Positions 16,208 through 64,000 of a stretch of DNA of 64,000 bases are shown piece by piece. The position numbers were made by a program, and so were the translations under genes. Numbering within the stretch: the stretch's first letter is position 1; the number at the start of each line of letters is the position of its first letter. The stretch is from the IMG/VR virus record IMGVR_UViG_3300046323_000587, positions 62,001 through 126,000 of that record; one strand, given 5' to 3'. The notes beneath the pieces are model-generated. The model saw only the letters and a program-made list of their open reading frames with translations, did not search any database and was not told where the DNA came from.

Positions 16208-16235
16208 ATCAATATTAAATTATCGATAATACATT

Positions 16236-30131: not shown

Positions 30132-30159
30132 TAACTAAACATTCAAATAATTTATCATT

Positions 30160-30205
30160 AATACTACTCTTTCTATCTATAAATGAGATTAAGAGTAGTA
30201 TTTTT
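30160..30205 (+). terminator. Intrinsic terminator
   Basis: aatactactctt / aagagtagtatt plus T-run. Confidence 0.7.
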
Positions 30206-30256
30206 GTTTTTATTATATTTTAAATATTATATTTAATAAAGAAACCTTATAATATT

Positions 30257-34844: not shown

Positions 34845-35402
34845 ATGAATAGATTAGATGTTTTAAAACAAAAAGTGGCTATTAATAAGCCAATGATTCA
34901 AAATCAAATGATGTCTCAACAAAGTGCTCCAATGGAAATGTATTCAGAAGAAGGTTTAGACAATGAAGAAGTAGAAGAAGTTTCAATGGAAGGTTTACAA
35001 GAAGATGTAATGAGTCAAGAATCTTTTGATGGGACGTATGATTTATCTACGTTTGCTTTATCTTTATTTACATTAAGAACTCAATTACATATTTGGCATC
35101 TTCAAACTAAATCATTTGCTGAACATAAAGCATTAAATAGTACTTATGATGATTTATTAGTATTGTTAGACAGTTATATTGAAAAAGCACAAGGTAAAAC
35201 TAACACTGTAATTAGAGTAGGTCATTTACAACCAAAAGAGCTTTGTGATTATCAACCTCAATATATGAGAGAATGTATTAGAAATACTTCACAAGAATAT
35301 CAAACGTTATTTCTTCAAATAGAAGGAGAAGATCTAAAGAATGTTATGGCTGAAATACTAGGTTTGTTAAATGAGTTAGAATATCTTTTAACATTGAATT
35401 AG
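34845..35402 (+). CDS. Ferritin/Dps-like phage protein (DUF5856-like) with acidic N-extension
   Basis: LHIWHLQTKSFAEHKAL..YD.L..LLD.YIE..QG and C-terminal YLLTL. Confidence 0.75.
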   Translation: MNRLDVLKQKVAINKPMIQNQMMSQQSAPMEMYSEEGLDNEEVEEVSMEGLQEDVMSQESFDGTYDLSTFALSLFTLRTQLHIWHLQTKSFAEHKALNSTYDDLLVLLDSYIEKAQGKTNTVIRVGHLQPKELCDYQPQYMRECIRNTSQEYQTLFLQIEGEDLKNVMAEILGLLNELEYLLTLN

Positions 35403-35415
35403 ACTTAAAATAAAA

Positions 35416-35445
35416 AATCCCTTATAAGTTATATTATAAGGGATT
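35416..35445. terminator. Bidirectional terminator between convergent gene blocks
   Basis: aatcccttataa / ttataagggatt with A-run on the left and T-rich sequence on the right. Confidence 0.75.
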
Positions 35446-35477: not shown

Positions 35478-38400
35478 CTACTTACTATCAAAAGTATTAA
35501 CAAAAAATCTAGTTAATCCAGTAGTTTTTAAAGCTGTATCTAATGCTTTAGTTCCATCTAAATCAACGAATAATTGTTTTAATATTTTTCCAAAAGTTTC
35601 TATGATAGTAAAGCCTACAATAGGATTATTAGTTGATACAACTGTAAAAGCTGCATTTGCAACAGCTAAATCTTGAAATGATACAGCAACATTTTTATAA
35701 AATTGTTTTTCTATCCCAGTCATCCCTTTTTCTGAACTTTCAAAAGCTCTCATTGTAGTATATCCTAATAAAAACATTAATAAGTCGGCTAATAATCTAA
35801 CTAAATTCTCTTTTCTATCTTCTCTTAAAGTACTCCAATTAAAATTCTTCTCATACATTTGTTTATATACTGCAACAATAGTTTGAAATATTCCTTCCAT
35901 TGTTTTACCTTCCCAATCCATTATTATGTTTACTAAATTACCTTCTGAGTCATAAATTTTCTTTTTTACAAACTTACCTTGCTTAGATTTTGATTGATCA
36001 ATTTGTTGTAACCACCATTTCTCTTTCAATGAAATCATCCAAGTTTTAAATTGTAGTAATAATTTCCCCCAAGCAGTTCTACCTAAAAGAGTTTTCTTGT
36101 CATTAGAATAAGCTCCAAACATTTTATCAGATAAGTTCTTAAAGGTTTCTATTTGTCTTATAGTATAAGGTTGAGAAATTTCTCCCTCAGAGTTCAATGC
36201 TTTTTCTATTCCTACTGTAGCAATTAACTCTTCTTTGATTCTTGAATACAATGCTTTTTGAGATAAATATGCTTCGTATACAGATTTATCAGATTTATTT
36301 GTAGGTGGATTAGCTTGATAAATAGGGTCAAAATATAACTTAAATCTTAAATCTTTTTTTGGATCATACCTTAAATTACCTTCTGAATCTACTGTTACTG
36401 CTGATTTCTCACTAACTCCTCCAACATTTTCTGTTATAATTATCCCATCTTTAATCATTTGTCCTATAAATATAGCTCTTCTATTTACTACATCAGGAAT
36501 TTTATTAAAGTGATACATATACTTACTAGAAAATAAACCTAATTTATTTCCAGTTTGCATCTCAGTTGCTATATTGGTATAATCAATATTAGTTATATTA
36601 AAATAATTATCTAGTCCGTCACAAAAACTAATATTTTTTTCTCTGACCCAATCAGGCAAAGCTTCGTCAAACATAACTACACCGTACCCAGAATATAAAT
36701 CATTTAAAGTAAAATTACCATTTCCTACTGTTTGATTAACAATTGCTTCTATATTGGTATTCCAAATACCCGATAACAAATTTCTTACTGAAAGCATTGG
36801 ATTATAACCAATAAAAATAGTTGATACTGCATCTTTAACAATAGAAAAAGATTTTTCTAGGAAGGGAAGCTCCATAGTTTTATCTTTTTGGTCTAGTACT
36901 CCATTAAGATAAGAATCTAAATAAGCTTCTAAATTTGGTAAAGCTCCAAATGAATTAGCTTTTCTATATAACATCAGTTGTTTAATAGAATCGTACATTA
37001 CCCTTATTTTAAGGAATTCTGCATCTTTATATTGATAAGACGTAAATTGATTTAAAACGTGTTCTAAGTGAGTTTCAAATACTTGACTTCTTTCTAAAAG
37101 TTTCTTACGGCGATCTTCCATATTTGTAATATATGAGTTCATTATGTCATTTTTTCCATAAGAGTTTTTTAATATATTTAATTCTCGTTTAGCATTGACA
37201 ATCTGGCTTTCATAAGGATCAAAAGATACATCTACACTTCCCATTCCTTTACTAGCCTCTCCAATATAGTTGTTTATATTAATAACAGAATCCCACCAAT
37301 TTTTAGTAGCTTCAACAAAAGAAAGATTTTTAAAATAAGTTTTCCAATTATTTTCTAATTTAGAAGAAGTTTTACTAGGAAAAGTTAATGGTATATCAAA
37401 TTTACGAGCTTGTTGTATTGGACTATTAAATAACAAAGTAATTTCTTGTTCTGTGTAATATTGTTGTCTTAATCTTTCTTTAATTGCTTCATCTCTTTCA
37501 AATATAAATTGATTTATAAAAGCTATTTCCTCTGCATTAAGTGGACCTTCTTTTTCTGTATAAGTTTTATTAGGATCTTTTAATTTCATATCTTTTGTAA
37601 TCATATTCTTAAAATAAACAGTAGTAGAACCTAATGTATATTCTTGTAGTTTACCAATATAAGTAAAGTTTTTCTTATATAAATTATTAACAATAGGTGT
37701 CAATCGTTCTCTATAAGTAAGAAAGTTTTTACGGAATACTACTAAAGCTTTATTTATATAATCTATAATATTAGAAATAAGAGTATTATTCATATTAATA
37801 GGGTTGGTAGTTTCAAATTCAATAAAATTAGATTCTAAATCTTTATCCAATGAAATAACCAAACCATTAAGTTGTAGTATAGCATTATCTAAATAATATT
37901 TCTTTTCGTTATCTAGTGTAGTTTCTTTACCAGCTAAACTTTTTCTAATTTCTATAAGATGTTTTAATAACCCTTTTCTAACTTCATTTTGAGTAGGAGT
38001 TTCTTTATATTTATCAAATAATTTTTTGTAATCATCTGTTTCAACTAACTCAATACGATTTTTTGTATTATTTGCATTAAAGCTTGTAACATATTCTGTA
38101 AAGGATTGAACCCAATCTTGTGAATTTATACCAGCTCCCATTGCAGTTTTTAAATCAAAAGTTTTAAGCTCTTCTGATTCACTTGAAGCCAATTTATCTT
38201 TTATTCTTTCTGTTGTAAATACAGTTTTAATTGTAGGTAGTAAGTCCTGTAAAGTAAAAGAAGAAAATTCTTTATTTTGGTATACTATTCTAATTTCACC
38301 AATAGCAGAGGGTTTAACATTATCTGACTTAAAAGTATCTCCAGTTTCTAACATAGCAATCATAGCTGTTTTTATAGCCTCTATATTTCTATATGAAGCT

Positions 38401-40952
38401 TTTAATACATTTGGTGCAAGTTCTTCTGTATCGCCATAAAAATTACCTAATAAAGAAGTTCCTAATTTCATTTCATCTACGATATCATTTGGATTAACAT
38501 TACTTTTTATAGTAGAAATATGAACAAAATCTAAAACATTTGTGTTATTGTGACGAAAAACTAAAATTCCATTTCTACGTAATTCTTCAAAAGAATTATC
38601 TAGTTTCCAAGGATTGTGGTCTCCATCTAAATACTTATTCAAGTTTGTATCTACTTGATCAATATTCCACAATCCTTTAAAAGGTGTTTTTGATAGGCCT
38701 GCCTCTGATTTTATGTGTTCAACATATCTAATAGTTGCATTAATATAATAATTACCATTATCATTATAATCATCAATTAAAAGTTGTGTTATTGCTTTCT
38801 TATCCTCTTCGTGAACTACTGTATCTCCTTTTTTAGTTTTCAATAATATCTTTACTACATTCTTTTCTTTTTCTTTTGTAGACTGTAACCAGAGAGAGTA
38901 ATATCTATTTCCTTTATCATCAACAGCAGAAACATTTTTATCATCTTTTAAAATCTCAATAAAATTTCTATTTCCTATATAAGGTGTAGCTTCATTAACA
39001 ATTGAAGAACCAAATACTTCTTTAAATAGTTGTCCTGTTAAAGAATCTTTTTTAGCTGAGATAGTTTGAGGTTCTTTATCAAATAATTTAGAAATATTCA
39101 CATCTATTTGTCCTCCAGGTGCAATCTTACCTAACCCTGTAAACATACTTCCACGAGTATACTCAACTGATTTTAAATCCTGGTTTTCATAATCAGCTTC
39201 AATTAAAATAGGGATAATATTAACAGAATTAACTTTAAGTTTACCATACCCCTTACTTTCTAAAATATTTTTATAGATGTTTAATTGATATTGTATTTTT
39301 AACTTTTTTTCACTACTCCATTCACCATAAGCTTTCTTACTTGTTTTATAATCATACACATCTAAGTCTCCATTAGCTCGAATTACAATTAAATCTATTG
39401 TACCAGCTATATTAGCATAAGTATCTAGACCTAAATTGATTCCACTAAATACAGAAGCTTCTGTTATAAGAGCGTCTCCTGGCTGTAGTTTTAAATCTAT
39501 ATAGATTTTTCTAGCAACTGACATAAGACTATCAACATATTTCTTTACATCTGATACACTAGAGAGACTACCTAATTCTGGTTTTTTAAAAGGAGCTAAA
39601 GCTAATATTTCTTCGGCTATATTTTCTTTTACAGCATTTAATTGATCTTTTGTTGGCTTACTTGTAAGAGTTTGAATATTTTTATAAGTTATCTCAATAG
39701 CTTTGTGAATTACAGTTCCTAACTCTCTTTCTAATTTCCAATCAAGCATTTGTTGATTCACTTTGTTTTCAGCATCTACTTCACTCATACCTTCTTCTTG
39801 GTATCGTCTTTTCATATCAGTCAATACCTCATTTATATTGAATGACATAGTTCCCCAAGGATTTTCTTTTAATATTTGCTTATTATTTTCTATAAAAGTT
39901 GTAGTACCATAAGTTGTTGTACTTCGGTCATCAGATACAATATATCTACCATCAAAAGTATTTTCATCAGCTTGCTCAATATCAAAAGGACCTTCTACTT
40001 TTCTTCCATTATTATTAATAAGCTCAATAATATCTATTACTTTAGTAGATTCGTCATTAAATAAAATAAAATCTGATTTCAAATCTTTTTGATTAGGTAG
40101 CTGTTTAGTTAAATCTATTACTTTATCAAATAAGCTGTTTGTTTGCGGTATGTTTAATAATTTTTTAAACCAGTTAATTACACGATTAAATAAAGAGATA
40201 TTATCTTGATCAACTATTTTTAAGTAAGATTGTAGTTTAGAATTAGTAAATATCCCAACTAAAAACTCATCAATATTAGTCAAACTATATAATAAATCTT
40301 CACTTTCTGTAATAGGTAAATTAACTATATACTCAGAAATAGTTTTTCTAATAGAATCAAACTCATTTTTAATATTATTTGAAGCTCCATTTAATTTATA
40401 ATGAGAAACCGCATGAACAATCTCGTGAATTACAGCTAAATCTGGGTCTAAACTAGATTTATTAATATAAATTTTATTTTCTTTTGCTGAATAAAAACTT
40501 GAATTTGATTTTAATATTTGAGTTCTATAAGATAGTTCTTTTCCAATCAATTCTTCAGGAGAAAGAAAACTGATTTGAACATTATTTAATTCTTTAAATA
40601 AAGATAGAAATGTACTTAAATCTCGATACTCACTTTTTTCATTTAATTTAAGATATTCTAATGCTGACTTCAATGAAAAATTTGTACCTAATACTTCATT
40701 AATAGTCTTTGGTTTTTGATAAGATATACTTAAAAACTCTCTTTTAGGTTCTCCACTAGAATCTAACTTAGATTTAATTACTTTATTATCAATCCAGTTA
40801 CCAAAACTATTTAAAAATTCTTGTGTATGTATTTCTAAGTAATATTTATAGCCTTGTTCTTTACCAAATTCTTTCTGTAATTGGTTAAACAATATAGAAG
40901 GCTTACCTGACTTGGTTTTTACTGTTATTTCTTTTGGATTTCTACAAAACAT
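35478..40952 (-). CDS. Large polyvalent putative virion/ejection protein: zincin peptidase, PD-(D/E)XK nuclease, helical C-terminus
   Basis: 1824 aa; HEIVH...DEF; GTVIH..IE...IAGTIDL...YDYKT...QLNIY; hydrophobic C-terminal helices. Confidence 0.75.
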   Translation of the reverse strand: MFCRNPKEITVKTKSGKPSILFNQLQKEFGKEQGYKYYLEIHTQEFLNSFGNWIDNKVIKSKLDSSGEPKREFLSISYQKPKTINEVLGTNFSLKSALEYLKLNEKSEYRDLSTFLSLFKELNNVQISFLSPEELIGKELSYRTQILKSNSSFYSAKENKIYINKSSLDPDLAVIHEIVHAVSHYKLNGASNNIKNEFDSIRKTISEYIVNLPITESEDLLYSLTNIDEFLVGIFTNSKLQSYLKIVDQDNISLFNRVINWFKKLLNIPQTNSLFDKVIDLTKQLPNQKDLKSDFILFNDESTKVIDIIELINNNGRKVEGPFDIEQADENTFDGRYIVSDDRSTTTYGTTTFIENNKQILKENPWGTMSFNINEVLTDMKRRYQEEGMSEVDAENKVNQQMLDWKLERELGTVIHKAIEITYKNIQTLTSKPTKDQLNAVKENIAEEILALAPFKKPELGSLSSVSDVKKYVDSLMSVARKIYIDLKLQPGDALITEASVFSGINLGLDTYANIAGTIDLIVIRANGDLDVYDYKTSKKAYGEWSSEKKLKIQYQLNIYKNILESKGYGKLKVNSVNIIPILIEADYENQDLKSVEYTRGSMFTGLGKIAPGGQIDVNISKLFDKEPQTISAKKDSLTGQLFKEVFGSSIVNEATPYIGNRNFIEILKDDKNVSAVDDKGNRYYSLWLQSTKEKEKNVVKILLKTKKGDTVVHEEDKKAITQLLIDDYNDNGNYYINATIRYVEHIKSEAGLSKTPFKGLWNIDQVDTNLNKYLDGDHNPWKLDNSFEELRRNGILVFRHNNTNVLDFVHISTIKSNVNPNDIVDEMKLGTSLLGNFYGDTEELAPNVLKASYRNIEAIKTAMIAMLETGDTFKSDNVKPSAIGEIRIVYQNKEFSSFTLQDLLPTIKTVFTTERIKDKLASSESEELKTFDLKTAMGAGINSQDWVQSFTEYVTSFNANNTKNRIELVETDDYKKLFDKYKETPTQNEVRKGLLKHLIEIRKSLAGKETTLDNEKKYYLDNAILQLNGLVISLDKDLESNFIEFETTNPINMNNTLISNIIDYINKALVVFRKNFLTYRERLTPIVNNLYKKNFTYIGKLQEYTLGSTTVYFKNMITKDMKLKDPNKTYTEKEGPLNAEEIAFINQFIFERDEAIKERLRQQYYTEQEITLLFNSPIQQARKFDIPLTFPSKTSSKLENNWKTYFKNLSFVEATKNWWDSVININNYIGEASKGMGSVDVSFDPYESQIVNAKRELNILKNSYGKNDIMNSYITNMEDRRKKLLERSQVFETHLEHVLNQFTSYQYKDAEFLKIRVMYDSIKQLMLYRKANSFGALPNLEAYLDSYLNGVLDQKDKTMELPFLEKSFSIVKDAVSTIFIGYNPMLSVRNLLSGIWNTNIEAIVNQTVGNGNFTLNDLYSGYGVVMFDEALPDWVREKNISFCDGLDNYFNITNIDYTNIATEMQTGNKLGLFSSKYMYHFNKIPDVVNRRAIFIGQMIKDGIIITENVGGVSEKSAVTVDSEGNLRYDPKKDLRFKLYFDPIYQANPPTNKSDKSVYEAYLSQKALYSRIKEELIATVGIEKALNSEGEISQPYTIRQIETFKNLSDKMFGAYSNDKKTLLGRTAWGKLLLQFKTWMISLKEKWWLQQIDQSKSKQGKFVKKKIYDSEGNLVNIIMDWEGKTMEGIFQTIVAVYKQMYEKNFNWSTLREDRKENLVRLLADLLMFLLGYTTMRAFESSEKGMTGIEKQFYKNVAVSFQDLAVANAAFTVVSTNNPIVGFTIIETFGKILKQLFVDLDGTKALDTALKTTGLTRFFVNTFDSK

Positions 40953-41050
40953 TATATAAAATGATTTAATTATTCTTTAAATTATTTTTTAAATTGATTA
41001 GAGTGCAACTTAACTATTGTTCAATTATTATATATCTTAAAAAGCAATAA

Positions 41051-41126
41051 TATTTGATATGAGAAAAAATTTTTTTTAAGTAACACTAATACTTCAAAAT
41101 AAAAAAATTTTTTCTCATATCAAATA
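41051..41126. repeat. 26-bp perfect inverted repeat with 24-nt spacer
   Basis: tatttgatatgagaaaaaattttttt (41051-76) / aaaaaaattttttctcatatcaaata (41101-26). Confidence 0.88.
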
Positions 41127-41143
41127 ATTTTAACTAACAAAGA

Positions 41144-42580
41144 CTAACAAGCAACTGATACTTGACCTTGCTGGGAAAGTTGAAAATGGATTTCTGCTAA
41201 ATTTTTTCCTAATAAATTTACTTGATTACGATATTCTTTTTCAGCAGTTAAAGGATTAAGTTTAGTTAAAAATTGTAACAAAGTTTCAGGTTTCTTTTGT
41301 TCTGCATTAATAATTAAAGTAGAAATTCCATTAAAAGGTTTTGTAAAAGTAATTGGTGAAGTATCTAATAAAATTGAATATTCTTTGTTAATGTTTGCAA
41401 CATCTTTTAATGCTTGTGCATAACTATTCTTTAATGTCTTAAATTCACCTTTAATAATTCTAACAGATTTTAATTTCTTTAATTTAGAAATTATTTCTTC
41501 ACTATAATTATTCAATTGTAAAAGAGTTGTTGCAGGTTTTTTTTTATTCTGTGGTAATTTTTTTAATAATTCTTCTATTGGTGAAGATTTACTTAATATT
41601 TTTGTAGGTTTAAATAAATTAAATTCAAATACTTTATTTGTACCAATTACTTTAAAATATTGATTAGTATCTTTTGTAAATATCTCTAATTGAGGATAAT
41701 ATTGAATCAAATCATTTATAACACCACTTCTATAAGAAAAATATTCAGGATTAGTTAATAAAATTGATTCATCTAATAATCTTAATAAATAAGGCAAAAC
41801 ATTAATATTATTTTTGATATCTTGTTTTTCACCTTCTAACGAGTACTTGTTAATCAATAAATCTGTAATAATTTTAGTAGACTCACTCAATTCAATTATT
41901 GTTTTATTGTTTTGTATTAAATGATCTCTATAATCAATAAAAGGTATGTTCAAAGATTCTCTAATTCCATTAAATAATACACCTGATTGATTAGAACGTA
42001 TATTCTTTGATTTTAATAAATCTAATATTGCTTGATGATATGGATTAGCTTTTAATACAACAGAGTTACCTTTTAATAAATTATAATAAAGTTTTCTATT
42101 TAATATTGAAAGTGCCTCAACATCATTTAAGTTAGAATCTTTTTTGAGTTGTTCTAAATCTAATATAACTTCACCAGAGTAATTATTATTAATCCAATTA
42201 TTAAAATCATTTTCATTATTTACACAACAAACAACAAGATTTGGTGTATTTGAACTATTTATTGTAATAGGAAATAAAGAATTTATATGAGGTTCATAAT
42301 TTTCATCTAAATTCAATCCTTCAAGTGATAATTCTAATAGATTTATATCATTACGAAACTTCTTTTTAAATGTATCTTTTTGAGAATTGGATAATTCTTT
42401 ATTAAACTTTAATTTTTGTAATAATTCAAAATTACCTAATTCATTTTGTTTAAAAGAAGAACTTAAATCTAAATAATATTCTAAAGCTTTCTTTTCATCT
42501 TGATTAAAATGAGATAATAAGTCCTTAAATAATAAAGACTTATTACCATTTATTGCTAATATTTCAGAAGTACAATTCAT
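41144..42580 (-). CDS. Putative virion cargo protein; N-domain similar to that of 35478..40952
   Basis: 478 aa; MNC...NGNKSLLF..L...YYL...F...GNF...LDENYEP; ends VAC. Confidence 0.65.
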   Translation of the reverse strand: MNCTSEILAINGNKSLLFKDLLSHFNQDEKKALEYYLDLSSSFKQNELGNFELLQKLKFNKELSNSQKDTFKKKFRNDINLLELSLEGLNLDENYEPHINSLFPITINSSNTPNLVVCCVNNENDFNNWINNNYSGEVILDLEQLKKDSNLNDVEALSILNRKLYYNLLKGNSVVLKANPYHQAILDLLKSKNIRSNQSGVLFNGIRESLNIPFIDYRDHLIQNNKTIIELSESTKIITDLLINKYSLEGEKQDIKNNINVLPYLLRLLDESILLTNPEYFSYRSGVINDLIQYYPQLEIFTKDTNQYFKVIGTNKVFEFNLFKPTKILSKSSPIEELLKKLPQNKKKPATTLLQLNNYSEEIISKLKKLKSVRIIKGEFKTLKNSYAQALKDVANINKEYSILLDTSPITFTKPFNGISTLIINAEQKKPETLLQFLTKLNPLTAEKEYRNQVNLLGKNLAEIHFQLSQQGQVSVAC

Positions 42581-42613
42581 TATATTTTATTGTAATTTAA
42601 TTATTAAAATGTA

Positions 42614-49642: not shown

Positions 49643-49661
49643 ATATTACTTTGGTTTTATA

Positions 49662-54002: not shown

Positions 54003-54122
54003 ATTTTTCTGTATTTAAATATTTAATACTTAATTATTTTAAATTAGTAATTAAAATCAAATCTAATAAAAATAAACTATATCATAATTCATTTCTATTA
54101 GAATCAATTTTTTACTCAAAAA

Positions 54123-57100
54123 TTAGCAATCTTTTATTACACTTGTAGCATCAGAGTTTAAATATAAATCATATATATCTTCTAAACTATCTTCATCAAA
54201 CTCTATGGTAGAACTAACAGGTGTAGAATCAAATAAGATATTTTTATTGAAAGTAAATCCTTCAATAACTTGATTAGAAGAAGCTTTATTTATTATACTT
54301 AAAGCCATTACAAAGTTAAACAATTTTTGATTAGTTTCACTATCAATGGTATTATACTGTGATAATAAATTTAATAAATTGTATTTATTTTGAATAGTTT
54401 TTATTTCTACTTTATTTAATGGTTGTCTATTATTAGGTTTATTTAATTGGTTTCTTAATTCAGTTACTTGATCTAATAAAGTATTTTTATATTCTTCTGT
54501 AATGTTAAAAAGGTTTGTAATATAATCTTGCAATCTAGTAAAAATATTTAAAGTTCTTGTATCAAGATTTTCTGTATTTAAAGGTATTTGAGGGTCAATT
54601 ACATTAAATTGAGATTTATTTAATTGACTTACTTTTTCAATATCTTGTTCTAATAAAATCTCTTCAGTAGTATTAAATAAACTATTTACAATCTTTTCTT
54701 TTAAATCGTTTAAGTTTGGTTTAATAAATTTTATACTTTGAATTTTTATACCTTCAATTTTATCTTCTTTGAAACTCACAGCAGTTTGTTTTTCTGAACC
54801 TTCTTTACCTGTAATAAAAACCCAACCACCTAAATCTTGTGAATCTAATAAAGATAAAGGATTACCAATAAATTTAATTTTTTCGTATGTTGGAACATCT
54901 TTATTAGCAAAATAGAATTCTTCTTGTACTTTAATAAAATTAGAAGACTTACCTTCTCTATAAACTTCTCTTTTTGGATCATCTTTAACAGGAATTGAGC
55001 TACTTAAATAATTTAATACAATATTCATAGTGTTAAATTCCATTGTTCCTTCTACTGTTGGAATAAATTTAACAAAATCAATATGATATTTTTCTGGAAG
55101 AATACTTGCAAAACTAGATTTACTTGAACCAAACTTGCTTGTAATAAGAGAATACCAAGCAAACATATCAGTAATGTTGTAAGACCTTTGAGAAGTGTAA
55201 TCAACTACTGTTTTACCTTTATTAATATCTTGCTCTGTAATAGTAAATAGTTCATTACCTTCTGAATCTTTTGTTACTGTAAAATATAATCCTTGAATAA
55301 GTTCAAAAGCTTTTTTCATATTTACTGTAACTGGATTTATATCATTATTCATTTCTGAATCAGCAAAAGCAACTAATGGCTGAATTAAGATATTAACTTC
55401 TTTATTCAAATAATTTGTTGCTTCTTTTGGAACAAGACTATTTAATACAGTTTTATAGAAGAAATCTATTCTTTCTTGTGGACTTTTAAAATCTAATTCA
55501 CCATCTTTATCAAAAGGTAAATAATTTGAATTATTGCTTGAAATTCTCAGAAAATCTTTTAAGGGATTAAAGAAATGTTCTCTAAAACTATTAAAGAACT
55601 CTTCTCTATTAGTTTGACTGTTTAAAGATTGTTTATTGAAATCTGTTTGAAAATCATCTGTTTCTTTTCCAGTTATAACAAAAATTGGATTGTCTTTTGA
55701 ATTAGATTTCTTTTCAATATATTTTTCAGTTATTACACTATATATGTGGTCTAATATAGAACTAAATTCAACATCAGTTAAGTTAGGCAACTTACCATTC
55801 TTTCCTCTAAAATTTTGTAGGTTTTCAACTAGATTTGTAAGTTCTCTGAATACAAAACTCTTATTTTGCATAATATCATAAATCATTGAATGTTGTGTAA
55901 AATAGTTTTTAAAATGTTGATTTACTTCTAATGAATATAAAATAGGGAAAGCTTTTTTAGTTAAGTTACTATATTCAATATGATATTGTCTATACCAAGC
56001 AATGTTTTCATTAGATTTAGTGATTTCTGAAAGATTATTTGGATTATCTATTGGTTGTTTATTAAATAAATAAAAGTTAAATATTCTAGGATTGTATTTT
56101 TTAGTTATTCCATTTGATATAACTTCCATTTCAGTTTCATTTTTTCTTGGATTTAATAAGATATCTTTAATTTTAGCTAACTCATTTGGTGAAATATTAT
56201 CAGTTATATGATCTATAAAAGAGTTTTCAGTCATAGATATTCTCTGTTCAAGTGAAGCAGCTTCTTTTTCTTTATTTGTCAATAATTCCATTTGTTCTTT
56301 ATTTCTATAATCAATAAAAGGAACACCAAATTTAGTTTTATGAAATTTCTCGTAAGATTCATTAATAAAAGTTTCAATAGTATTATTAAAAGAGAAGTGA
56401 TCTTGAAAAGTTCCCTTATGACTTTGATTGATTCCTAACATTTTACCAAACATATTAAACTCCATTCCAACTTCAATCAATCCAACAAATTCTTTTAGTT
56501 TATATAAAGCTGTAGAATCTAGATTTTGAGTTCTATATAACCATTTATAAAAGTTTATTTCCCAAGTATTTCTACTACTTTTAGGTATATAATCTGTACT
56601 AGATAAAAGTCTTTTTTCGTATAAAATTATATTTTTTAAAGAATCTTTTTTTAATATAGAAAGTATATAAGAGTTATCAATTGTTTCAATTTCTTCTGTA
56701 TCTTTAAACCCATCAAATTTTTCTAGTAGTTTCTTTACTTTAATAGGTTTGTTTACTCTATAAGCAATTCTTAAAATATTCTGAATATCGTCAATTTCTG
56801 CAACAGATAATACACTTTTAGTAGTAGCGTTTTTCTTAAAATTTAATGTAAATTTATGTTTTTCTCCTTCAATATTACTAGAATGTTCAAACACCAGAAG
56901 AGATTTAACTTTTAAGTCTATTAGTTCTTTAATAGAATGTCCTGACTTAGTAATAAATAAATTATCATATTCATCAAACTCAATGTCAGCTAAAGTTTTT
57001 TCTTCAAGTTTTTTAATCAGTGAGCTATAAGTGTGTAAGAAGTCATTACTATTATCAGCAGCAACTTGTTTTGTTTTTCCATAAGAAGTTATACTATACT

Positions 57101-60100
57101 TATCATTTTCTATTTTAAGTCCAGGTACAGTAGCATACCTACCTACAACATCACCAATTTTATCAGAATTACCGTAAGTATGTATATCTGTTGATTTAGC
57201 TAATTCTTTAAATATAATATCAGCTTCTGGTGAAATTAAAATAGAGATGATATCTTCAACAGGTGTACCTAATGCAGTCAAAGCAGAAAATGTAGAAGCA
57301 GTATAAGAATTTAAATTCAATTTACCTAAAATCATTTCTTTTGCATTATCAGTTGCAGCAGACACAGCTTGAGAGATAGTTTCCCAAGCAGAAGAATCTA
57401 ATATAGTTTTAGATAAATAGAAAGCTCTTAATGTAGAAACTTCTTCTTCAATTGCTTTTTCTAGTTCTTCTCCTTTTAAACCTTTGGCAATTAATTTTTC
57501 TCTAATTTTAATTTTATTGTTACCAAATGTATCTTGCATATCTTTAGTAAGCTCATCAAAAGAACCTTTAAGTGTATCTGTAGAAATTTTTTCAAAATCT
57601 TCACCTCCTTCAGATAAAATTAATTTCACTGAAGTAAACATAGCTGAATCAATATGAAAACTTGCATTCTCCATAAATTCTTTCATAAATTTAAGTTGTT
57701 CTCCAAGTTGATTTAATCTTTTAGTTTCTTGCTCAGTTTTATTAGATTTACCTAATAATTTATCATACTCTTTCTGTTGTTTAGATTCATTTAACTTTAA
57801 ATTAGATGCAGAACTATAAAACTTAGGTACACCATCTTTATCAGTAACTTTAATAGCAGAAGCAGTAAAATCTTTTAATTTAGCTCCGTCTGACATATTA
57901 GTTCTAACAAAAGTTTGTTTAGGTACAAATACAAATCTTGAATCTGCATTTTTCATTGCTAGCATACTTGCATTAAAATAAATAGCATAAGCTTTCATAT
58001 CTTGTGCAAATATACCAGTTAATGATTTACCATCTCTATTTAAAGCAACCATAATAGCTTGATCCATTGAAGAGAATTGAGAAAAAGTTAATTTACCTTT
58101 AACAGATTTTTTAGATTGTGCTTGCATTGAATCCATTGAAATAGGTGAATTAGCTTGTACTCCATTTGCAGGATGTGTAATAATATCATACAATCTCTGA
58201 CTTATATAATTCTTATAAGCTTTTTGCCTGTATTGATTAGCTTTAAGCTTTTTTTCTTTAATAACTTTAATAGAATCTCCTTCAATAAGTTTACCTTTTT
58301 CATCTGTACTAGAAAGTTTTATACGAAATCTTTTAGGAAGAAATTGATCACTTTCAATAAAATCAACATCTAATTCTAAATCAAATGTTTCAGGTCTGCT
58401 TAAATCTATATCTTTATTCCATTTAATAAATTCACCTCTGTCAAAAGCAAATGCCATAATATTGAGTTTATCAATATCATAATCCGAACCTTGGAACCAA
58501 AGCATTTCTAATGGGTGATATACGGCATTACCTAAATCATTTTGAAATCCAACAACTTTCATACCAACATAAGACTGCATACCTTGTGCAGGAATACGAG
58601 CTCCAACCATCTCAAGAGATTTTTGAAAAGCTAGATATTTTTCTTTTGCTTTTTGTTGTAAAGATTCTTGAGTTTTAGAAGGCACAGTAAAATAAGTTTC
58701 TGATAGATTTTTGATCTTTTCTTCAACCATTATTAAAGTGTTATCAGATTGTTTAAAACTTTGATTAGTAGATAATAGTTTTTCTTCTTTTTGTTGTTGA
58801 AGTATTAATTGAAATTTTTGATTGTCTATTATAGAAATCTGATATTCTATTTCATCAAGTTTAGTTTGGTTTTTTGTATTAGATTTAGTTTCTAATAAAC
58901 TTAACCTTTCAATATCAATAGAATTAATTTTAGTTTGTAAGCCTTTTAATAAAGTTTTAGAAGATTTAATTGTATTATTTAATAGCCTGTTTGTTTCAGT
59001 AGCTTTATCTTTAAAAGTATTTAAATTTTTTAGTTGTTTATCTAAATCAATCAAATACTTTTTACCAGTTTTCTTAATTTCTTTTGCTTTCCAATCTCTT
59101 TCAAATCTAATGTAAAAATAATTTTCATTATACTGATCAATAGTGTAACCTTCTTCTAAATTAAATTGCGTTTTATACATTGAATCGATAATAACTTCAC
59201 AAGGATCAGTTTTATATCCCTCATCTGATAGATGTTTTTGTAATTTAGCTGTAGCAAATCTCCACATAATGTTAGAAAAAGATAATTTTGCTTTTGCTTC
59301 TTTATATAGCTTATAATCTGCACTATTTTGAAGTTCAACTTCTGAATCAGAATTTTTTGCTAATTGTTTATTTTTTTCTATGATTGCTTCAAGCTTTTCG
59401 TATACTTTAATAGCATTTTCTAAATCATTCTTAGTTTTTCTTACTTCTTCCATTAAAGGGTTAGTAAAACTTGCAATATTCCCTTCTTCATCAACTACGG
59501 TATCAGTCAAATATTCCCTATTTCCATCAATATCTCTATAATAACCAGTCCATTTTAAATTTCTAGATTTTAATGTTTTATAAGCTGGTGTTCCTTGATT
59601 TTCTTTAATCCATTTAGAATATACTTCTTGTGTACCTACTTCATCTTTTTCTAGTACTTTACCATTCAATACACTTCCAGCTGGAAAATCATATACTTTA
59701 ACAACATTATGACTTGGTGTCATAACCATTTGATTACCTGTGAATTTATGACGAATACCTTTCTTAGAAAAATCAGAAGCTAATTGAACAAATATACCAT
59801 TAAATACACTTTTATGTGAAATAAGGCTATTTACAGAAATTTTATCTTCATGTTTATCGTTATATTTATTTACAGCTTCAATTAATCTTGCAGTGCTACC
59901 TGATTTCTGATTAGCAATTACATCTTCACAAAAAGCACGAAATACTTCAACACCTTCTTCTTCTTTTGAAGGGTCTAATACAGTTTTCCATTCTTTAAGA
60001 TTAGAATCACCTAATTTAGCTAAACCTAATGCAACTTCATTTGCTAGTTCGCTTGTGTGCCCTTCAAGAAAGTTAGCTTGTAAAATTTGAGAAATTACAC

Positions 60101-63100
60101 TAATGACAGCTTCATCAGATTCGTGCTCTGTTGCAGTCTGTAATTTTAATCCTGTTGTCTCTGTAACAAAGAATGAATTATTTAATTCTTCTTGTGTAGC
60201 ACTGTAAAACCTTTCTTGTGTTATACCTCCTGGCTGTTGAGCTTTAGCAGAAGAAGGGTATCTCATAAAACTAACATAGAAATCTCTAGCTCCAGGAAAT
60301 TGTTGTTCAATTACAGGAAATACATCATTAACAATAACTTCCGCAATATCATTTGAAGCTCTGTTAATATTTTGATATACTCCATTTATTTTATTGATTT
60401 CAGAATCTCCTTTATCAGGTATTATAGAAGTTATTCTAGGTTGAAATCCTTCTAAACTCCCATTATTTTTTTCTTTGTATTCTTGTTCTAATTCAGAATA
60501 AGTTTTTCCATTAGCTAAATAAACCATCATTTCAAAATAGTTATTGAATGAAACTCCACTAATAGAATCCATATATTCAATAAATTTATAGTCTTGACTA
60601 AATCTATAAATTGGTTTACTCAATGAAATATTTAATACAACTTTTTCAAGAAAAGGGATAGAGTGCATCTTTTTAGTAGCTTCATAAAAATTATGGTTTC
60701 CTGCTTCATTTAATTTAGTTTGTTCAATAGATTCAGCTGTCATAAAGTGAATTGCACTTTTATCTAGTATTCTACCTCCAAAGAACCCATCTGCCAAAAT
60801 TTGAATAAATTTAGATGTACCACTTACAACTTGTCCGTGTTCTCCTCCTAATGCTTTTTGTAATACAACTCTTGCTAACACTCCACCAACTTGAGCTCCA
60901 TCAGCAATATCTTGATCTGTTTTAATTTCTCCTGCATTAGATTTCATTGGAATTTTATTGTTTCCAGGGTCAACCATAATTACTAACATCTCATTTTTGA
61001 GTCCTAGAGAATTATTCATAATAGTTCTCTCATTTCCTGTTGCAGTTTCAGTAACCATTCTTTTTACTCCATCTGTAAAAGAAGCATTAATACTTGTTGG
61101 AAGTATTTTAGTGAACATAAATTCATTATATAATGATAATAAATCTGAATCACTGTTTATAGTATCAGTATAATCAACTAAAGAACTAATTTCATTTAAT
61201 TGAATAAGTTTATTTTTAATAACTTCATTTTCTAGATTTATATCTTTTAAAAACGAATTAAACTCTTTTTTTAATGTAGATATGTTATTATATATATCCC
61301 ATTTAACTTTCTTAGCCTCTCTATCAAATGTACTTCCACTAGAACCCAATCTTAATTGTGAACCATACATAGAGTGCATTAAATAGAACAATTCAAAGAA
61401 TTTATTTGGAATTATCTCACCTGTTTTTTCAACTACAACACTTGTTTTATAAGCAGTAATATACTGAGAATTACCTCTTTTATCTGTTACAGATTGATTA
61501 TCTTGAAAATCTTCTAAATACGTCATTGCTGACTCATTTTCTGATAAAGCTAGTAAAGTTCTTAATTGTTTCACATTAGGTAAATGTCTATAGTCATCTA
61601 ATGTTTTAGCAAATTCAGGTAAGCCTATTTTTAAAAATATATCTTTTGATTTTTCTAATTCAGTTGCATAATTTATATTATGAAATTGCTCATAACTATC
61701 AGCATTATTTAAAGTTTTCATATACAACAGTAAATCAGGTTTAATCACTATTCCTGAAACATCTTCATTTAAACTATTCTTAGTTTTATATACAGTATAA
61801 ACAGAATTTTTTTCAGCTTGTGCTTTCCAGAATATTTTATCTTGATAATTAGCCATTACATTTTTATCTAATTTACCTTCTAAACCAGATAATATAGTAT
61901 TGATTTTATATAAAATATTTACATATTTATCAGGATCAGAATGATCTAAATCAGAAGAAAAATAATTTACAGAATTTTCATCTTCTTCATTAAATACTTC
62001 TGATTTTAAATCATTCATTTGTTTTTCTAGAAGTTGTTTTTCATCAATAGATAGATTAGACTTAGAAGTTTGTATTAAATAGTTTAAAAATCCAGAACCA
62101 TTTTGTTCTTGATGAAGTTCTTGTAATTTAGCTACTTTTGCTTCATCGGATAAATCTTTAAATCTTGGATCTTTTATTGCTTCTAAATAAGAAAGCATTG
62201 CCTCTATGTGAGATGTTGAAGTAATATCAAAAGATAAATAAGTATAACAAAGTTTACGAGCAAGAGAATTAAAGTGTTTTTGTTGAGAAGTTCTATTTTT
62301 CTCTCTTAAAGCAACTAAAGAAGTCAATCCTTCTATATTAGGTTTTACAGTAGGTACATAGTTAGTAGGTTTATCTGCGTAAGTATTAGGGTTAAGAATA
62401 AATTCAAAAGTATTCTTCTTCAATGCTTCAGCCATTTTTAAATAGAAGAATATATCTATATTAACAAGAGCTGTTTCATCTTTATCTAAATCTTTATTTT
62501 GTTTTACTTTATCAGTTGATTTTTGTAATACTCCGTCAATTAAACTTACATAACGATAAGAATCTGACTCTGTAAAGAATAGATTATTAGCTAGAACTGA
62601 ATTAAATATAGAATTAGCTAAACCTAAACTACTTAATTTAGTATTTGTTGCTTTTGTTACAGCTAAATCTTGTGTAAAAGATAATGCTAATGCAAAATTA
62701 ATGCTTGTAGGCACATTTGAATCTTTAACATTTCTTGTTACTGTACTTGTTTTACTAACATCAATAATAGAAGTATCTTCATTTGTTAGTAAATCGTTTA
62801 GTCTTATACCAATAAAATTAGAATAAGTTTCTCCATTTTTAGTTAAACGAACTAATCTATTGTTATTATTCTTTTTATTAATTTCTATAAAAGGTTTAAT
62901 ACTATCAATAACAGTATTTTGGTCTTGAATTCTTTTTAATAACAAACTTGCTATTTTATATTGTAAATGAAAAATACTTCTATGTTTTTTATCTTCAAAG
63001 TTTGTAGAATCTTCTCTATAATCTAAATTTTCATCTCCATAAATTTCTATAATATAGCTTCTTAATAATTTTGGATTGTTTTTTAATTTTTCTATTCTAT

Positions 63101-64000
63101 TGCCTGGAACATAAGTAGCTAGTTGATTTATGCATTTATCATAGTCTTTTTTATTAAAATTCTCCCAAATAGTGTTTTTATTACTAGAAAGAGTTTCTAA
63201 TAAATTAGTATAATACTCTTTATTTTTTTCTATTAATTGGTCTATATTAAGTTTATTGCTTGTACGAGGATTTTTAAATTTTAAATCTCCAATTAACTTA
63301 TTTGCAAAACGTTCTCTTAGATTTTTAATATAACCTTGACCTTTATATTTATCTTCTATTACAATTGAAGCAGATGCACTTCCAGTAAGTTTTACCGCTA
63401 CATAAGAGATATTACTAGCAGTTTTAAAATCAATTAACATTGGAATCAATAGTTGTTCAGATTCACCCGTTTCTAATAAAGCTCTATACATTGAAATAGA
63501 GTTATTACTTACATCTAATGAAAAATATTTATCATAAAGAGCTTTTAATAAATTAAATTGAGTTTCTTGTAAGTTTAAACTATTATTCTCTAAAACAGAT
63601 TTTATATTTTGTCTGAATATTTCTATATCTCCAATAGAAGTTAAAGGTTTCAATCCTGCTACTTCATAATCTATCTCCATTTGTTGAAAAGCCTCTTTTC
63701 TTAATAACTCACTGTTTTTATTTAATAGCAATTCAGCTTTATTTTTAGCTTCTCCAAATATGTTAGCAATCTCTCTAAAAGTAAGATAAGATTCTCCTGT
63801 TGAGATATTAGACAACATTAATTGACCAATAGAAGAGAATTTATGGTGTTCAACATTATCTTCATTTGAATAGTTATCTTTAATTGTAAGACTTTTATCT
63901 GAATGTACTTCTCCTTTACCATTAATAGAAACTATTCTATCAAAAGTTGCATTTACTAACCCTGTAAAATTATTATGAATAACTTTCAATAGATTTTCTA
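54123..64000 (-). CDS. Giant crAss-type virion RNA polymerase (5' end beyond the window)
   Basis: >3288 aa with the frame open to the window edge; RIPAQGMQS and GSDYDIDK (58467-58490) match the double-psi-barrel DxDxD catalytic loop of crAss-like RNAPs; SAATDNAKE.IL.KLN. Confidence 0.88.
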   Translation of the reverse strand, partial: ENLLKVIHNNFTGLVNATFDRIVSINGKGEVHSDKSLTIKDNYSNEDNVEHHKFSSIGQLMLSNISTGESYLTFREIANIFGEAKNKAELLLNKNSELLRKEAFQQMEIDYEVAGLKPLTSIGDIEIFRQNIKSVLENNSLNLQETQFNLLKALYDKYFSLDVSNNSISMYRALLETGESEQLLIPMLIDFKTASNISYVAVKLTGSASASIVIEDKYKGQGYIKNLRERFANKLIGDLKFKNPRTSNKLNIDQLIEKNKEYYTNLLETLSSNKNTIWENFNKKDYDKCINQLATYVPGNRIEKLKNNPKLLRSYIIEIYGDENLDYREDSTNFEDKKHRSIFHLQYKIASLLLKRIQDQNTVIDSIKPFIEINKKNNNNRLVRLTKNGETYSNFIGIRLNDLLTNEDTSIIDVSKTSTVTRNVKDSNVPTSINFALALSFTQDLAVTKATNTKLSSLGLANSIFNSVLANNLFFTESDSYRYVSLIDGVLQKSTDKVKQNKDLDKDETALVNIDIFFYLKMAEALKKNTFEFILNPNTYADKPTNYVPTVKPNIEGLTSLVALREKNRTSQQKHFNSLARKLCYTYLSFDITSTSHIEAMLSYLEAIKDPRFKDLSDEAKVAKLQELHQEQNGSGFLNYLIQTSKSNLSIDEKQLLEKQMNDLKSEVFNEEDENSVNYFSSDLDHSDPDKYVNILYKINTILSGLEGKLDKNVMANYQDKIFWKAQAEKNSVYTVYKTKNSLNEDVSGIVIKPDLLLYMKTLNNADSYEQFHNINYATELEKSKDIFLKIGLPEFAKTLDDYRHLPNVKQLRTLLALSENESAMTYLEDFQDNQSVTDKRGNSQYITAYKTSVVVEKTGEIIPNKFFELFYLMHSMYGSQLRLGSSGSTFDREAKKVKWDIYNNISTLKKEFNSFLKDINLENEVIKNKLIQLNEISSLVDYTDTINSDSDLLSLYNEFMFTKILPTSINASFTDGVKRMVTETATGNERTIMNNSLGLKNEMLVIMVDPGNNKIPMKSNAGEIKTDQDIADGAQVGGVLARVVLQKALGGEHGQVVSGTSKFIQILADGFFGGRILDKSAIHFMTAESIEQTKLNEAGNHNFYEATKKMHSIPFLEKVVLNISLSKPIYRFSQDYKFIEYMDSISGVSFNNYFEMMVYLANGKTYSELEQEYKEKNNGSLEGFQPRITSIIPDKGDSEINKINGVYQNINRASNDIAEVIVNDVFPVIEQQFPGARDFYVSFMRYPSSAKAQQPGGITQERFYSATQEELNNSFFVTETTGLKLQTATEHESDEAVISVISQILQANFLEGHTSELANEVALGLAKLGDSNLKEWKTVLDPSKEEEGVEVFRAFCEDVIANQKSGSTARLIEAVNKYNDKHEDKISVNSLISHKSVFNGIFVQLASDFSKKGIRHKFTGNQMVMTPSHNVVKVYDFPAGSVLNGKVLEKDEVGTQEVYSKWIKENQGTPAYKTLKSRNLKWTGYYRDIDGNREYLTDTVVDEEGNIASFTNPLMEEVRKTKNDLENAIKVYEKLEAIIEKNKQLAKNSDSEVELQNSADYKLYKEAKAKLSFSNIMWRFATAKLQKHLSDEGYKTDPCEVIIDSMYKTQFNLEEGYTIDQYNENYFYIRFERDWKAKEIKKTGKKYLIDLDKQLKNLNTFKDKATETNRLLNNTIKSSKTLLKGLQTKINSIDIERLSLLETKSNTKNQTKLDEIEYQISIIDNQKFQLILQQQKEEKLLSTNQSFKQSDNTLIMVEEKIKNLSETYFTVPSKTQESLQQKAKEKYLAFQKSLEMVGARIPAQGMQSYVGMKVVGFQNDLGNAVYHPLEMLWFQGSDYDIDKLNIMAFAFDRGEFIKWNKDIDLSRPETFDLELDVDFIESDQFLPKRFRIKLSSTDEKGKLIEGDSIKVIKEKKLKANQYRQKAYKNYISQRLYDIITHPANGVQANSPISMDSMQAQSKKSVKGKLTFSQFSSMDQAIMVALNRDGKSLTGIFAQDMKAYAIYFNASMLAMKNADSRFVFVPKQTFVRTNMSDGAKLKDFTASAIKVTDKDGVPKFYSSASNLKLNESKQQKEYDKLLGKSNKTEQETKRLNQLGEQLKFMKEFMENASFHIDSAMFTSVKLILSEGGEDFEKISTDTLKGSFDELTKDMQDTFGNNKIKIREKLIAKGLKGEELEKAIEEEVSTLRAFYLSKTILDSSAWETISQAVSAATDNAKEMILGKLNLNSYTASTFSALTALGTPVEDIISILISPEADIIFKELAKSTDIHTYGNSDKIGDVVGRYATVPGLKIENDKYSITSYGKTKQVAADNSNDFLHTYSSLIKKLEEKTLADIEFDEYDNLFITKSGHSIKELIDLKVKSLLVFEHSSNIEGEKHKFTLNFKKNATTKSVLSVAEIDDIQNILRIAYRVNKPIKVKKLLEKFDGFKDTEEIETIDNSYILSILKKDSLKNIILYEKRLLSSTDYIPKSSRNTWEINFYKWLYRTQNLDSTALYKLKEFVGLIEVGMEFNMFGKMLGINQSHKGTFQDHFSFNNTIETFINESYEKFHKTKFGVPFIDYRNKEQMELLTNKEKEAASLEQRISMTENSFIDHITDNISPNELAKIKDILLNPRKNETEMEVISNGITKKYNPRIFNFYLFNKQPIDNPNNLSEITKSNENIAWYRQYHIEYSNLTKKAFPILYSLEVNQHFKNYFTQHSMIYDIMQNKSFVFRELTNLVENLQNFRGKNGKLPNLTDVEFSSILDHIYSVITEKYIEKKSNSKDNPIFVITGKETDDFQTDFNKQSLNSQTNREEFFNSFREHFFNPLKDFLRISSNNSNYLPFDKDGELDFKSPQERIDFFYKTVLNSLVPKEATNYLNKEVNILIQPLVAFADSEMNNDINPVTVNMKKAFELIQGLYFTVTKDSEGNELFTITEQDINKGKTVVDYTSQRSYNITDMFAWYSLITSKFGSSKSSFASILPEKYHIDFVKFIPTVEGTMEFNTMNIVLNYLSSSIPVKDDPKREVYREGKSSNFIKVQEEFYFANKDVPTYEKIKFIGNPLSLLDSQDLGGWVFITGKEGSEKQTAVSFKEDKIEGIKIQSIKFIKPNLNDLKEKIVNSLFNTTEEILLEQDIEKVSQLNKSQFNVIDPQIPLNTENLDTRTLNIFTRLQDYITNLFNITEEYKNTLLDQVTELRNQLNKPNNRQPLNKVEIKTIQNKYNLLNLLSQYNTIDSETNQKLFNFVMALSIINKASSNQVIEGFTFNKNILFDSTPVSSTIEFDEDSLEDIYDLYLNSDATSVIKDC

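Follow-up and report, generated by a model that had tools for sequence, protein, structure and literature searches.

The window analysed here is a stretch of 64,000 nt (positions 62,001 to 126,000) of the IMG/VR virus record IMGVR_UViG_3300046323_000587. Its minus strand carries, between positions 35478 and 64000, five consecutive large open reading frames (ORFs) in the window ORF listing, which belong to the predicted cargo block of a crAss-like phage. The window sequence recurs without difference in two IMG/VR contigs (141 kb and 226 kb), which allowed the block to be followed beyond the window end; the two records (IMGVR_UViG_3300046328_000499 and 3300046323_000587) have a guanine-plus-cytosine content of about 24% and, by the standards of crAss-like phages, are large and AT-rich. 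On the source contig, the block forms a chain of six genes covering about 41 kb, the products of which follow one another in the order 3833, 3655 (the RNA polymerase, RNAP), 1446, 2342, 478 and 1824 amino acids (aa) and meet at five junctions. The initial annotation of the window had described a five-protein chain; all five members are indeed encoded in the window, the RNAP in part, but the 3833-aa first member, which lies upstream of the RNAP and outside the window, had been missed. The start of the 3655-aa RNAP (MADC) was likewise read on the source contig, as it lies beyond the window end. The features within the window are as follows, the positions of the cysteine (Cys) codons being taken from the translations.

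54123 to 64000, minus strand: predicted virion RNAP, chain member 2; the C-terminal 3292 of 3655 codons lie in the window
58470 to 58484, minus strand: DYDID catalytic metal-binding motif of the two-barrel RNAP, residues 2203-2207, located by alignment
54126 to 54128, minus strand: last residue of the RNAP, C-terminal junction Cys3655, TGC codon (..IKDC, then stop)
49662 to 54002, minus strand: 1446-aa chain member 3, with 2-oxoglutarate (2OG)-Fe(II) oxygenase-like and DprA-like domains; starts MKIC
53991 to 53993, minus strand: junction Cys4 of the 1446-aa protein
49716 to 49718, minus strand: Cys1429 of the 1446-aa protein, 17 residues before its C-terminus
42614 to 49642, minus strand: 2342-aa chain member 4, with a conserved N-terminal domain (N-domain), ART-PolyVal and a PIF1/Dda-like helicase
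49634 to 49636, minus strand: junction Cys3 of the 2342-aa protein (MFC)
42620 to 42622, minus strand: junction Cys2341 of the 2342-aa protein (..NNCF, then stop)
41144 to 42580, minus strand: 478-aa chain member 5; starts MNC, ends ..VAC
42572 to 42574, minus strand: junction Cys3 of the 478-aa protein
41147 to 41149, minus strand: junction Cys478, the last residue of the 478-aa protein
35478 to 40952, minus strand: 1824-aa last chain member, with a PD-(D/E)XK nuclease domain; ends ..FDSK, with no C-terminal Cys
40944 to 40946, minus strand: junction Cys3 of the 1824-aa protein (MFC), which has one internal Cys (Cys1444) besides

The six chain proteins comprise 13,578 residues and only 17 Cys, ten of which lie at the five junctions, where a Cys near the C-terminus of one protein faces a Cys near the N-terminus of the next. 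The 3833-aa protein starts MEEQKPDWLL and has its sole Cys as the second-to-last residue (..ISCK), so that the chain opens without an N-terminal Cys; with the 1824-aa protein it also closes without a C-terminal one. Internal Cys are confined to a few positions, four in the RNAP besides the junctional ones, two (118 and 119) in the 478-aa protein and one (1444) in the 1824-aa protein. The termini quoted in the initial annotation for all five window proteins were each confirmed by translation, and so was its statement that the 1446-aa and 2342-aa proteins contain no other Cys (only residues 4 and 1429, and 3 and 2341, respectively). Taken over all genomes considered below, the junction rule reads as one Cys about 0-10 residues from the C-terminus, or 17 in a single protein, followed by one among residues 2-6 of the next protein.

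The Cys content of the chain block is 0.16%, compared with 1.17% in the 41 plus-strand ORFs of the window, which constitute the replication module (DNA polymerase, DnaB-like helicase, primase, ribonucleotide reductase, exonuclease, Dda-like helicase and an rIIA-like protein) and none of which has a Cys in its first four residues. With terminal zones defined as the first 6 or last 18 residues of each protein, the probability of finding at least 10 of the 17 Cys in these zones under random placement is p = 3e-16, and Fisher tests of junction Cys against 88 control ORFs gave p values of about 1e-31 to 1e-33. Cys is therefore suppressed relative to the phage proteome, but its absence is not essentially complete, one conserved residue being kept at each junction terminus.

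As judged from sequence, the products of the block are those that a crAss-like phage packages in its virion and injects: a giant protein resembling gp47, a two-barrel RNAP of the phi14:2 gp66/crAss001 gp50 family and four 'polyvalent' effectors, among which helicase, nuclease, DprA-like, ADP-ribosyltransferase (ART)-like and oxygenase-like domains are distributed. The RNAP contains the stretch GARIP..GSDYDIDK at residues ~2160-2210, which aligns with GSDFDVDK of crAss001 gp50 and GSDFDIDK of relatives, so that the DxDxD (DFDxD) catalytic motif is present in its conserved barrel context. A single-sequence phmmer search of the RNAP core against the PDB gave no match, whereas a profile of the catalytic region of this lineage's RNAP, built from seven sequences including the window protein, matched PDB 6VR4_A (the phi14:2 RNAP) with E = 2.5e-38. 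Crass-type RNAP has been shown to be present in virions and active early in infection for phi14:2 and crAss001 only (PMC10172136; bioRxiv 10.1101/2020.03.07.982082). Several unrelated effector or DNA-processing domains occur per giant polypeptide, namely ART-PolyVal and the PIF1/Dda-type helicase in the 2342-aa protein and the oxygenase-like and DprA-like domains in the 1446-aa protein, while PD-(D/E)XK is the only domain match of the 1824-aa protein; several of these matches score below the Pfam gathering threshold. PHROG and Pfam scans returned nothing for the 3833-aa protein and the RNAP, and the 478-aa protein had no Pfam or PHROG match and none in GenBank phages by tblastn. A DUF4326-like domain, which the initial annotation had assumed to have lost its Cys ligands, could not be recovered: Pfam PF14216 had no match anywhere in the chain, with a cut-off of E ≤ 5 for members 3 to 6 and of E ≤ 1 for the 3833-aa protein and the RNAP.

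Related loci were collected from IMG/VR with the 2342-aa protein or a profile of its N-domain, and are 26-61% identical. Their layouts vary, with two, three or four chain genes visible, and the junction rule is kept. Among the automatically extracted non-redundant junctions, 20 of 22 have both Cys; one of the two failures (locus L003) is an ORF-start artefact, the true start being MPC, and the other (L033) is considered below. The junctions of L012, L037-L043 and L049 all conform, an ORF ending ..NNIGC preceding MNC in L038-L043. None of the 19 non-redundant last proteins has a Cys within its last 12 residues. The chain proteins of these loci contain 51 Cys in 113,811 residues (0.045%), as opposed to 1.22% in the control ORFs of the same loci, only two of 47 of which have a Cys in the first 6 residues and two of 47 in the last 12. 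Extreme cases are L050, in which proteins of 2150, 3035 and 1267 aa have four Cys in total, all junctional, and L020, with an ORF of at least 6146 aa that has a single Cys, 2 residues from its end.

The same arrangement is found in cultured and distant phages, as listed here in chain order.

crAss001: gp47 (2341 aa, sole Cys at -2, encoded on the opposite strand), gp50 (MSKRC.. to ..KICGANTLYEL), gp49 (MAKKC, sole Cys)
DAC15: gene arrangement and junction pairs as in crAss001; four internal Cys
phi14:2: gp078 (sole Cys is the last residue), gp077 RNAP (MAC.. to ..QECK), gp076 (MSC, sole Cys)
p-crAssphage-like MW067002: ..FICM, followed by MSC..
crAss002: ..FVCS, followed by MSC.. at codon 33 of the annotated gene
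Flavobacterium phage Fpv3: gp32 (4287 aa, sole Cys at -1), followed by gp33 (MAC)
cr60_1 (Suoliviridae): ..HCKKS, followed by MTC
cr4_1 (Suoliviridae): ..LNCKGK, followed by MIC
cr10_1 (Suoliviridae): ..HCINNHNENNLS, followed by MKIIC
cr50_1 (Suoliviridae): ..KECE, followed by MQC

In crAss001, gp47, gp50 and gp49 together have five Cys, four of them junctional, and all three proteins have been detected in virions (PMC10172136). The three phi14:2 proteins amount to 5398 aa with four Cys, and the GenBank record annotates each of them as a structural protein detected by tandem mass spectrometry. Close homologues of crAss001 gp50 have the N-terminal Cys in 119 and the C-terminal Cys in 120 of 120 cases, and the four Suoliviridae genomes keep the rule in spite of recoded in-frame stops. 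When the window and its IMG/VR relatives are combined with crAss001, DAC15, phi14:2, the p-crAssphage-like genome, crAss002, Fpv3 and the four Suoliviridae, 46 of the 47 non-redundant junctions obey the rule. The terminal Cys are thus retained in homologues, a point on which the initial annotation had made its proposal depend, and the terminal enrichment it had suggested looking for, together with the absence of Cys at the chain ends, is seen across Crassvirales families.

The distribution of the Cys pairs follows the division of the cargo into genes. Modules were defined by BLAST mapping as A (gp47-like), B (RNAP) and C (gp49-like). In Steigviridae, A, B and C are separate proteins and two Cys pairs are present; in the four Suoliviridae genomes and in Fpv3, A and B are fused and a pair is found at the B-C junction only; in Intestiviridae, B and C are fused and a pair is found at the A-B junction only. 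The pair is therefore absent where modules are fused and present where they are split, even with one of the genes on the opposite strand, and the Cys of both partners are gained and lost together. That the rule exists, is conserved and depends on gene fission can be read directly from these genomes. A further regularity concerns the first protein of the chain, which has no N-terminal Cys in 12 of 12 complete cases; a word-based homologue search with the 3833-aa protein returned only itself, so this count comes from 12 individually inspected genomes.

The equal numbers of C- and N-terminal Cys per genome, their absence at the extremes of the chain and their joint loss upon fusion argue that each C-terminus pairs with the next N-terminus and speak against a hub to which all the proteins would be joined. 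It could be supposed instead that each terminal Cys acts independently, for attachment to a virion part such as the portal or C1 cargo, for homodimerisation or as a site of modification, and disulfides are indeed used by tail proteins of crAss001 (PMC10172136). Such independent roles would, however, leave unexplained exactly these regularities, that is, the missing N-terminal Cys of all 12 complete chain-first proteins, the missing C-terminal Cys of chain-last proteins, and the matched numbers and joint loss of the two kinds of Cys, and we regard them as very improbable. An intramolecular disulfide between the N- and C-terminus of the same protein is ruled out, because many of the chain-end proteins have only one Cys. 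Lipoprotein, intein and sortase-like readings were also rejected, as the termini show neither a signal peptide or lipobox nor a conserved domain.

The gaps at the junctions range from -4 to 191 nt, and many junctions are tight or overlapping (-4 to +6 nt), which would suit an explanation at the nucleotide level, in which general Cys suppression is combined with a sequence motif around stop and start codons (arising, for instance, from translational coupling or from AT-rich codon bias) and the Cys have no role in the protein. A motif of this kind is ruled out by the variability of the gaps and of the spacing between the Cys codon and the stop or start, by the use of both TGT and TGC, and by gene A of crAss001 and DAC15, which lies on the opposite strand, away from the start of B, and nevertheless keeps its C-terminal Cys. 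Other genes of these genomes lack the feature, and the rule is maintained in the recoded Suoliviridae and in differing genome backgrounds, leaving practically no probability for an explanation without a protein-level role.

To sample the RNAP more broadly, a profile search of 1.84 billion cluster representatives was made, yielding 150 diverse RNAPs after clustering at 50% identity, 128 of them full-length. A Cys occurs within the last 12 residues of all 128 and within the first nine residues of 105. Terminal Cys account for 233 of the 302 Cys in these proteins, the overall content being 0.064%. In 22 motif-bearing RNAPs without the N-terminal Cys, the catalytic motif lies about 700 residues further in (median position 3063 compared with 2352; p = 2e-6), as expected of A-B fusions. 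Inspection of the contigs accounted for all four RNAPs not explained by such a fusion. In two of them the gene caller had chosen a later start, the true ones (MKC and MIC) directly following ..SICK or ..PEEC; in a third (L062, 9408-10001) the gene is interrupted, a 148-aa N-terminal piece (MNC..) after ..SIGCE being separated by a 146-nt gap from the remainder, which could reflect a frameshift, an assembly error or an insertion; the fourth is cut by the contig end. The junction rule predicted these corrections. By the same rule, several deposited or automatic starts of the giant RNAP gene appear to be wrong, and MSC, MKC or MIC further up- or downstream is indicated instead; in cr10_1, the ORF beginning MKIIC.. 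after gp32 is missing from the annotation. The suspect starts are at the following places.

L052 (MW067002): 16152-16215
L055 (crAss002): 11996-12092
L058 (cr10_1): after 21984
L061 and L063

The 2342-aa protein offers a view of a single terminal Cys within a large family. Of 87 homologues, 85 have a Cys at residue 2-9, mostly at 3 or 4, and in 76 of them, which are 2100-2900 residues long, it is the sole Cys of the protein. In an alignment of 30 diverse homologues Cys3 is invariant, whereas the rest of the first ~100 columns is unconserved and the residues flanking the Cys vary; in the tails of the proteins encoded upstream, the C-terminal Cys is the only constant feature. The AlphaFold2 (AF2) model of the window protein has low confidence for residues 1-115 and a confident fold for residues 120-590. 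This location of Cys3 in an unstructured leader favours a tether over a residue of the fold or active site, and the presence of terminal Cys in unrelated proteins, together with the low-confidence leader, led us to reject a role of Cys3 in the catalysis or structure of one particular domain family.

Residues 120-590 (window positions 47870-49285) form a well-conserved domain with an invariant HDIDG and other motifs and a predicted local distance difference test (pLDDT) score of about 90. This domain opens the protein that follows the RNAP in most relatives; it has no Pfam match, and a Foldseek search against the PDB gave no significant match (best E = 0.086). Proteins sharing it end with a C-terminal Cys, at lengths of 574-591, 689, 1167 or 2342 residues, when an MxxC protein follows, and have no C-terminal Cys, at lengths of 2100-2900 residues, when they are the last of the chain. 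A tree built from the N-domain calls for a minimum of 4-5 changes into or out of the state in which a protein is short, has a C-terminal Cys and precedes an MxxC protein, suggesting that this state was gained or lost repeatedly; the tree was made by a quick method with P0087 left out, and several long branches make exact placements uncertain.

Based on these observations, we favour with moderate confidence the reading that the products of separate genes are joined head-to-tail, most likely by disulfides, and so restored to a 'polyprotein' that can be stored and ejected in order. We propose the following hypothetical sequence of events, in which (i) each C-terminal Cys would be bonded in the virion to the N-terminal Cys of the next protein; (ii) the separate gene products would thereby become one linear, nearly unbranched thread with the order found in the fused polyproteins of other lineages; (iii) the position of the Cys near the chain ends would make the joint about as thin as a polypeptide, and the removal of other Cys would avoid loops and branches; (iv) the thread would be stored and then pushed or pulled in fixed order through the narrow portal and tail; and (v) the reducing cytoplasm of the host would cut the links and free the proteins, including their enzymes. 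The more far-reaching version of this proposal, on which we are evenly divided, is that crAss-like phages in general use terminal-Cys disulfides to stitch separate cargo proteins covalently into a linear super-polypeptide that passes through the tail in fixed order and is cut by host thiol reductases; in the present phage it would join six proteins with 13,578 residues to about 1.5 MDa. The comparative predictions of the head-to-tail linkage suggested in the initial annotation were all borne out, while the bond itself, its chemistry (disulfide or metal), its presence in virions and its role in ejection and release are what we infer from them.

A disulfide would be the simplest chemistry for one Cys per terminus with variable neighbours. 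The initial annotation had also raised shared metal sites, and the pairing logic would suit any bridging chemistry: the terminal pair might bind a metal ion or cluster without forming a disulfide, perhaps as in a zinc hook, where two copies of the junction would share the site, and several cargo copies are present per virion (PMC10172136). However, no conserved His, Asp, Glu or second Cys is found near the single Cys of each terminus, the flanks are variable, and two thiolates alone would make a poor Zn or Fe site, so that we judge a metal-based link improbable. Disulfides, including intermolecular ones, do occur in crAss001 virions, in the tail and gp57 (PMC10172136).

As to the purpose of the link, cargo has to pass constrictions of less than 50 Å partly unfolded (PMC10172136), and the placement of the Cys at the ends together with the purging of others fits such a passage. 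The proteins might also be linked head-to-tail for co-packaging, either in equal stoichiometry or to hold the split RNAP complex and the effectors together in the capsid, and not for ordered threading. The same sequence evidence would fit, as sequences are silent on when and why the link matters. For a mere tether, however, surface Cys anywhere in the proteins would be tolerable, while the strict confinement to the chain ends and the loss of other Cys describe a threadable, unbranched joint; moreover, the cytoplasm is an unlikely place for disulfides to arise ahead of packaging. We therefore consider co-packaging as the sole purpose unlikely.

Several points weigh against a disulfide-linked thread. 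The support for the linkage, although strong, is comparative and not chemical; the cargo is not resolved in the cryo-electron microscopy maps of crAss001 (PMC10172136). Since assembly takes place in the reducing cytoplasm of an anaerobic host and the gut is anoxic, an oxidant or catalyst would be needed, as would a means of bringing the right partners together. Some tails extend further beyond the Cys, by 17 residues in the 1446-aa protein and by 5-10 in the crAss001-type RNAP family, and internal Cys could mispair (four in the window RNAP, two in the 478-aa protein and up to seven in the Suoliviridae fusions). Finally, the single exception to the junction rule, in L033 (1290-1350), carries a TAA stop placed five codons ahead of the conserved RNAP ending ..NPLNC; sequencing error, recent mutation and read-through are possible explanations.

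The proteins considered here are the same, and lie in the same genomic block, as the known Crassvirales cargo (crAss001 gp47, gp50 and gp49; phi14:2 g065-g067 in the numbering of the phi14:2 paper), which is packaged in the capsid, is expected to be ejected partly unfolded and is fused into one polyprotein in some phages (PMC10172136; bioRxiv 10.1101/2020.03.07.982082). The published model of this cargo differs in having neither a junction Cys rule nor a covalent chain, and in the present phage four polyvalent effectors extend the chain. Strong Cys suppression is already known from the N4-like phages (Schitoviridae), in which the giant virion RNAP (gp50/gp71) and the co-ejected gp51/72 and gp52/73 resemble the crAss-like set and in which it has been ascribed to passage through the envelope (PMC11445570). 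In these proteins, however, Cys is reduced to about zero, so that there are no terminal pairs and linking is impossible, whereas crAss-like phages keep exactly the junction Cys. Polyvalent proteins are thought to be delivered with the DNA, and release of their domains by built-in peptidases has been proposed (Iyer et al. 2017; PMC5512222). Chain members 3, 4 and 6 carry domains typical of these proteins; the polyvalent-protein paper makes no mention of cysteines or disulfides, and in the present phage the domains reside on separate genes and are apparently re-joined via Cys.

Intermolecular disulfides in particles made in a reducing cytoplasm are known for vaccinia core proteins (PMC2132897). 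These bonds, like those of the crAss001 tail and gp57, stabilise a shell or tail and do not join ejected cargo end to end. In AB toxins such as diphtheria toxin and the clostridial neurotoxins, a single disulfide tethers cargo that crosses a narrow channel unfolded and is released by reduction in the cytosol. The two chains of these toxins derive from one nicked polypeptide, with neither a capsid nor a concatenation of several genes, so that the resemblance is a functional analogy and not homology.

The structural atlas of crAss001 (PMC10172136) and the phi14:2 RNAP paper (bioRxiv 10.1101/2020.03.07.982082) do not mention the Cys of these cargo proteins, nor are the junction Cys of the A-B-C(-effector) series mentioned in the large crAss genomics paper, the Crassvirales review, the 2026 N4 paper or the polyvalent-protein paper (PMC5512222). 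Full-text searches of the openly accessible literature yielded no description of the combination, in agreement with the initial annotation, whose author was aware of none. What is new compared with the suppression known from N4-like phages would be a conserved linking device on crAss-like cargo.

CrAss-like phages are the most abundant viruses of the human gut and store megadaltons of protein that they inject ahead of their DNA. Published models state no more than that this cargo must partly unfold and leave in some order, for which the rule of one Cys per end offers a concrete mechanism that is cheaply testable in the cultured models crAss001, DAC15 and phi14:2. If true, a disulfide would stand in for a peptide bond, allowing injected polyproteins to be split, shuffled and extended with effector genes while delivery is kept. 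Besides correcting the start annotation of giant genes, the rule predicts the membership and order of the injected set and would explain why the RNAP polyprotein is split differently among families and how extra anti-host effectors are appended to a delivery chain.

Just upstream of the chain, C1/C2-like cargo proteins are encoded that are mostly Cys-free and in this respect resemble the N4 ejection proteins, although crAss001 gp45 has two Cys. The injected set seems to consist of a Cys-free class and a junction-Cys class. The Cys-poor C1/C2-like proteins are located as follows.

L016: 2349-7324
L051: gp079 and gp081
L052: 3719-10209
L056-L059: upstream pairs
L060: gp46

In the p-crAssphage-like locus L052, a thioredoxin and a truncated thioredoxin are encoded near the cargo block (29836-31103); a connection with the redox state of the junction Cys would be pure speculation. 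Within the window, the minus-strand gap between the 478-aa and 1824-aa genes (40953-41143) is, at 191 nt, unusually long for an otherwise tightly packed block and contains a perfect inverted repeat of about 23 nt (TTTGATATGAGAAAAAATTTTTT and its complement), which could act as a terminator, an attenuator or an internal regulatory hairpin. At ~35400-35445, between the convergent 1824-aa gene and the plus-strand ORF 34845-35402, a GC-containing hairpin (CCCTTATAA..TTATAAGGG) is followed by a T-run and is likely a bidirectional terminator where the replication and cargo modules meet.

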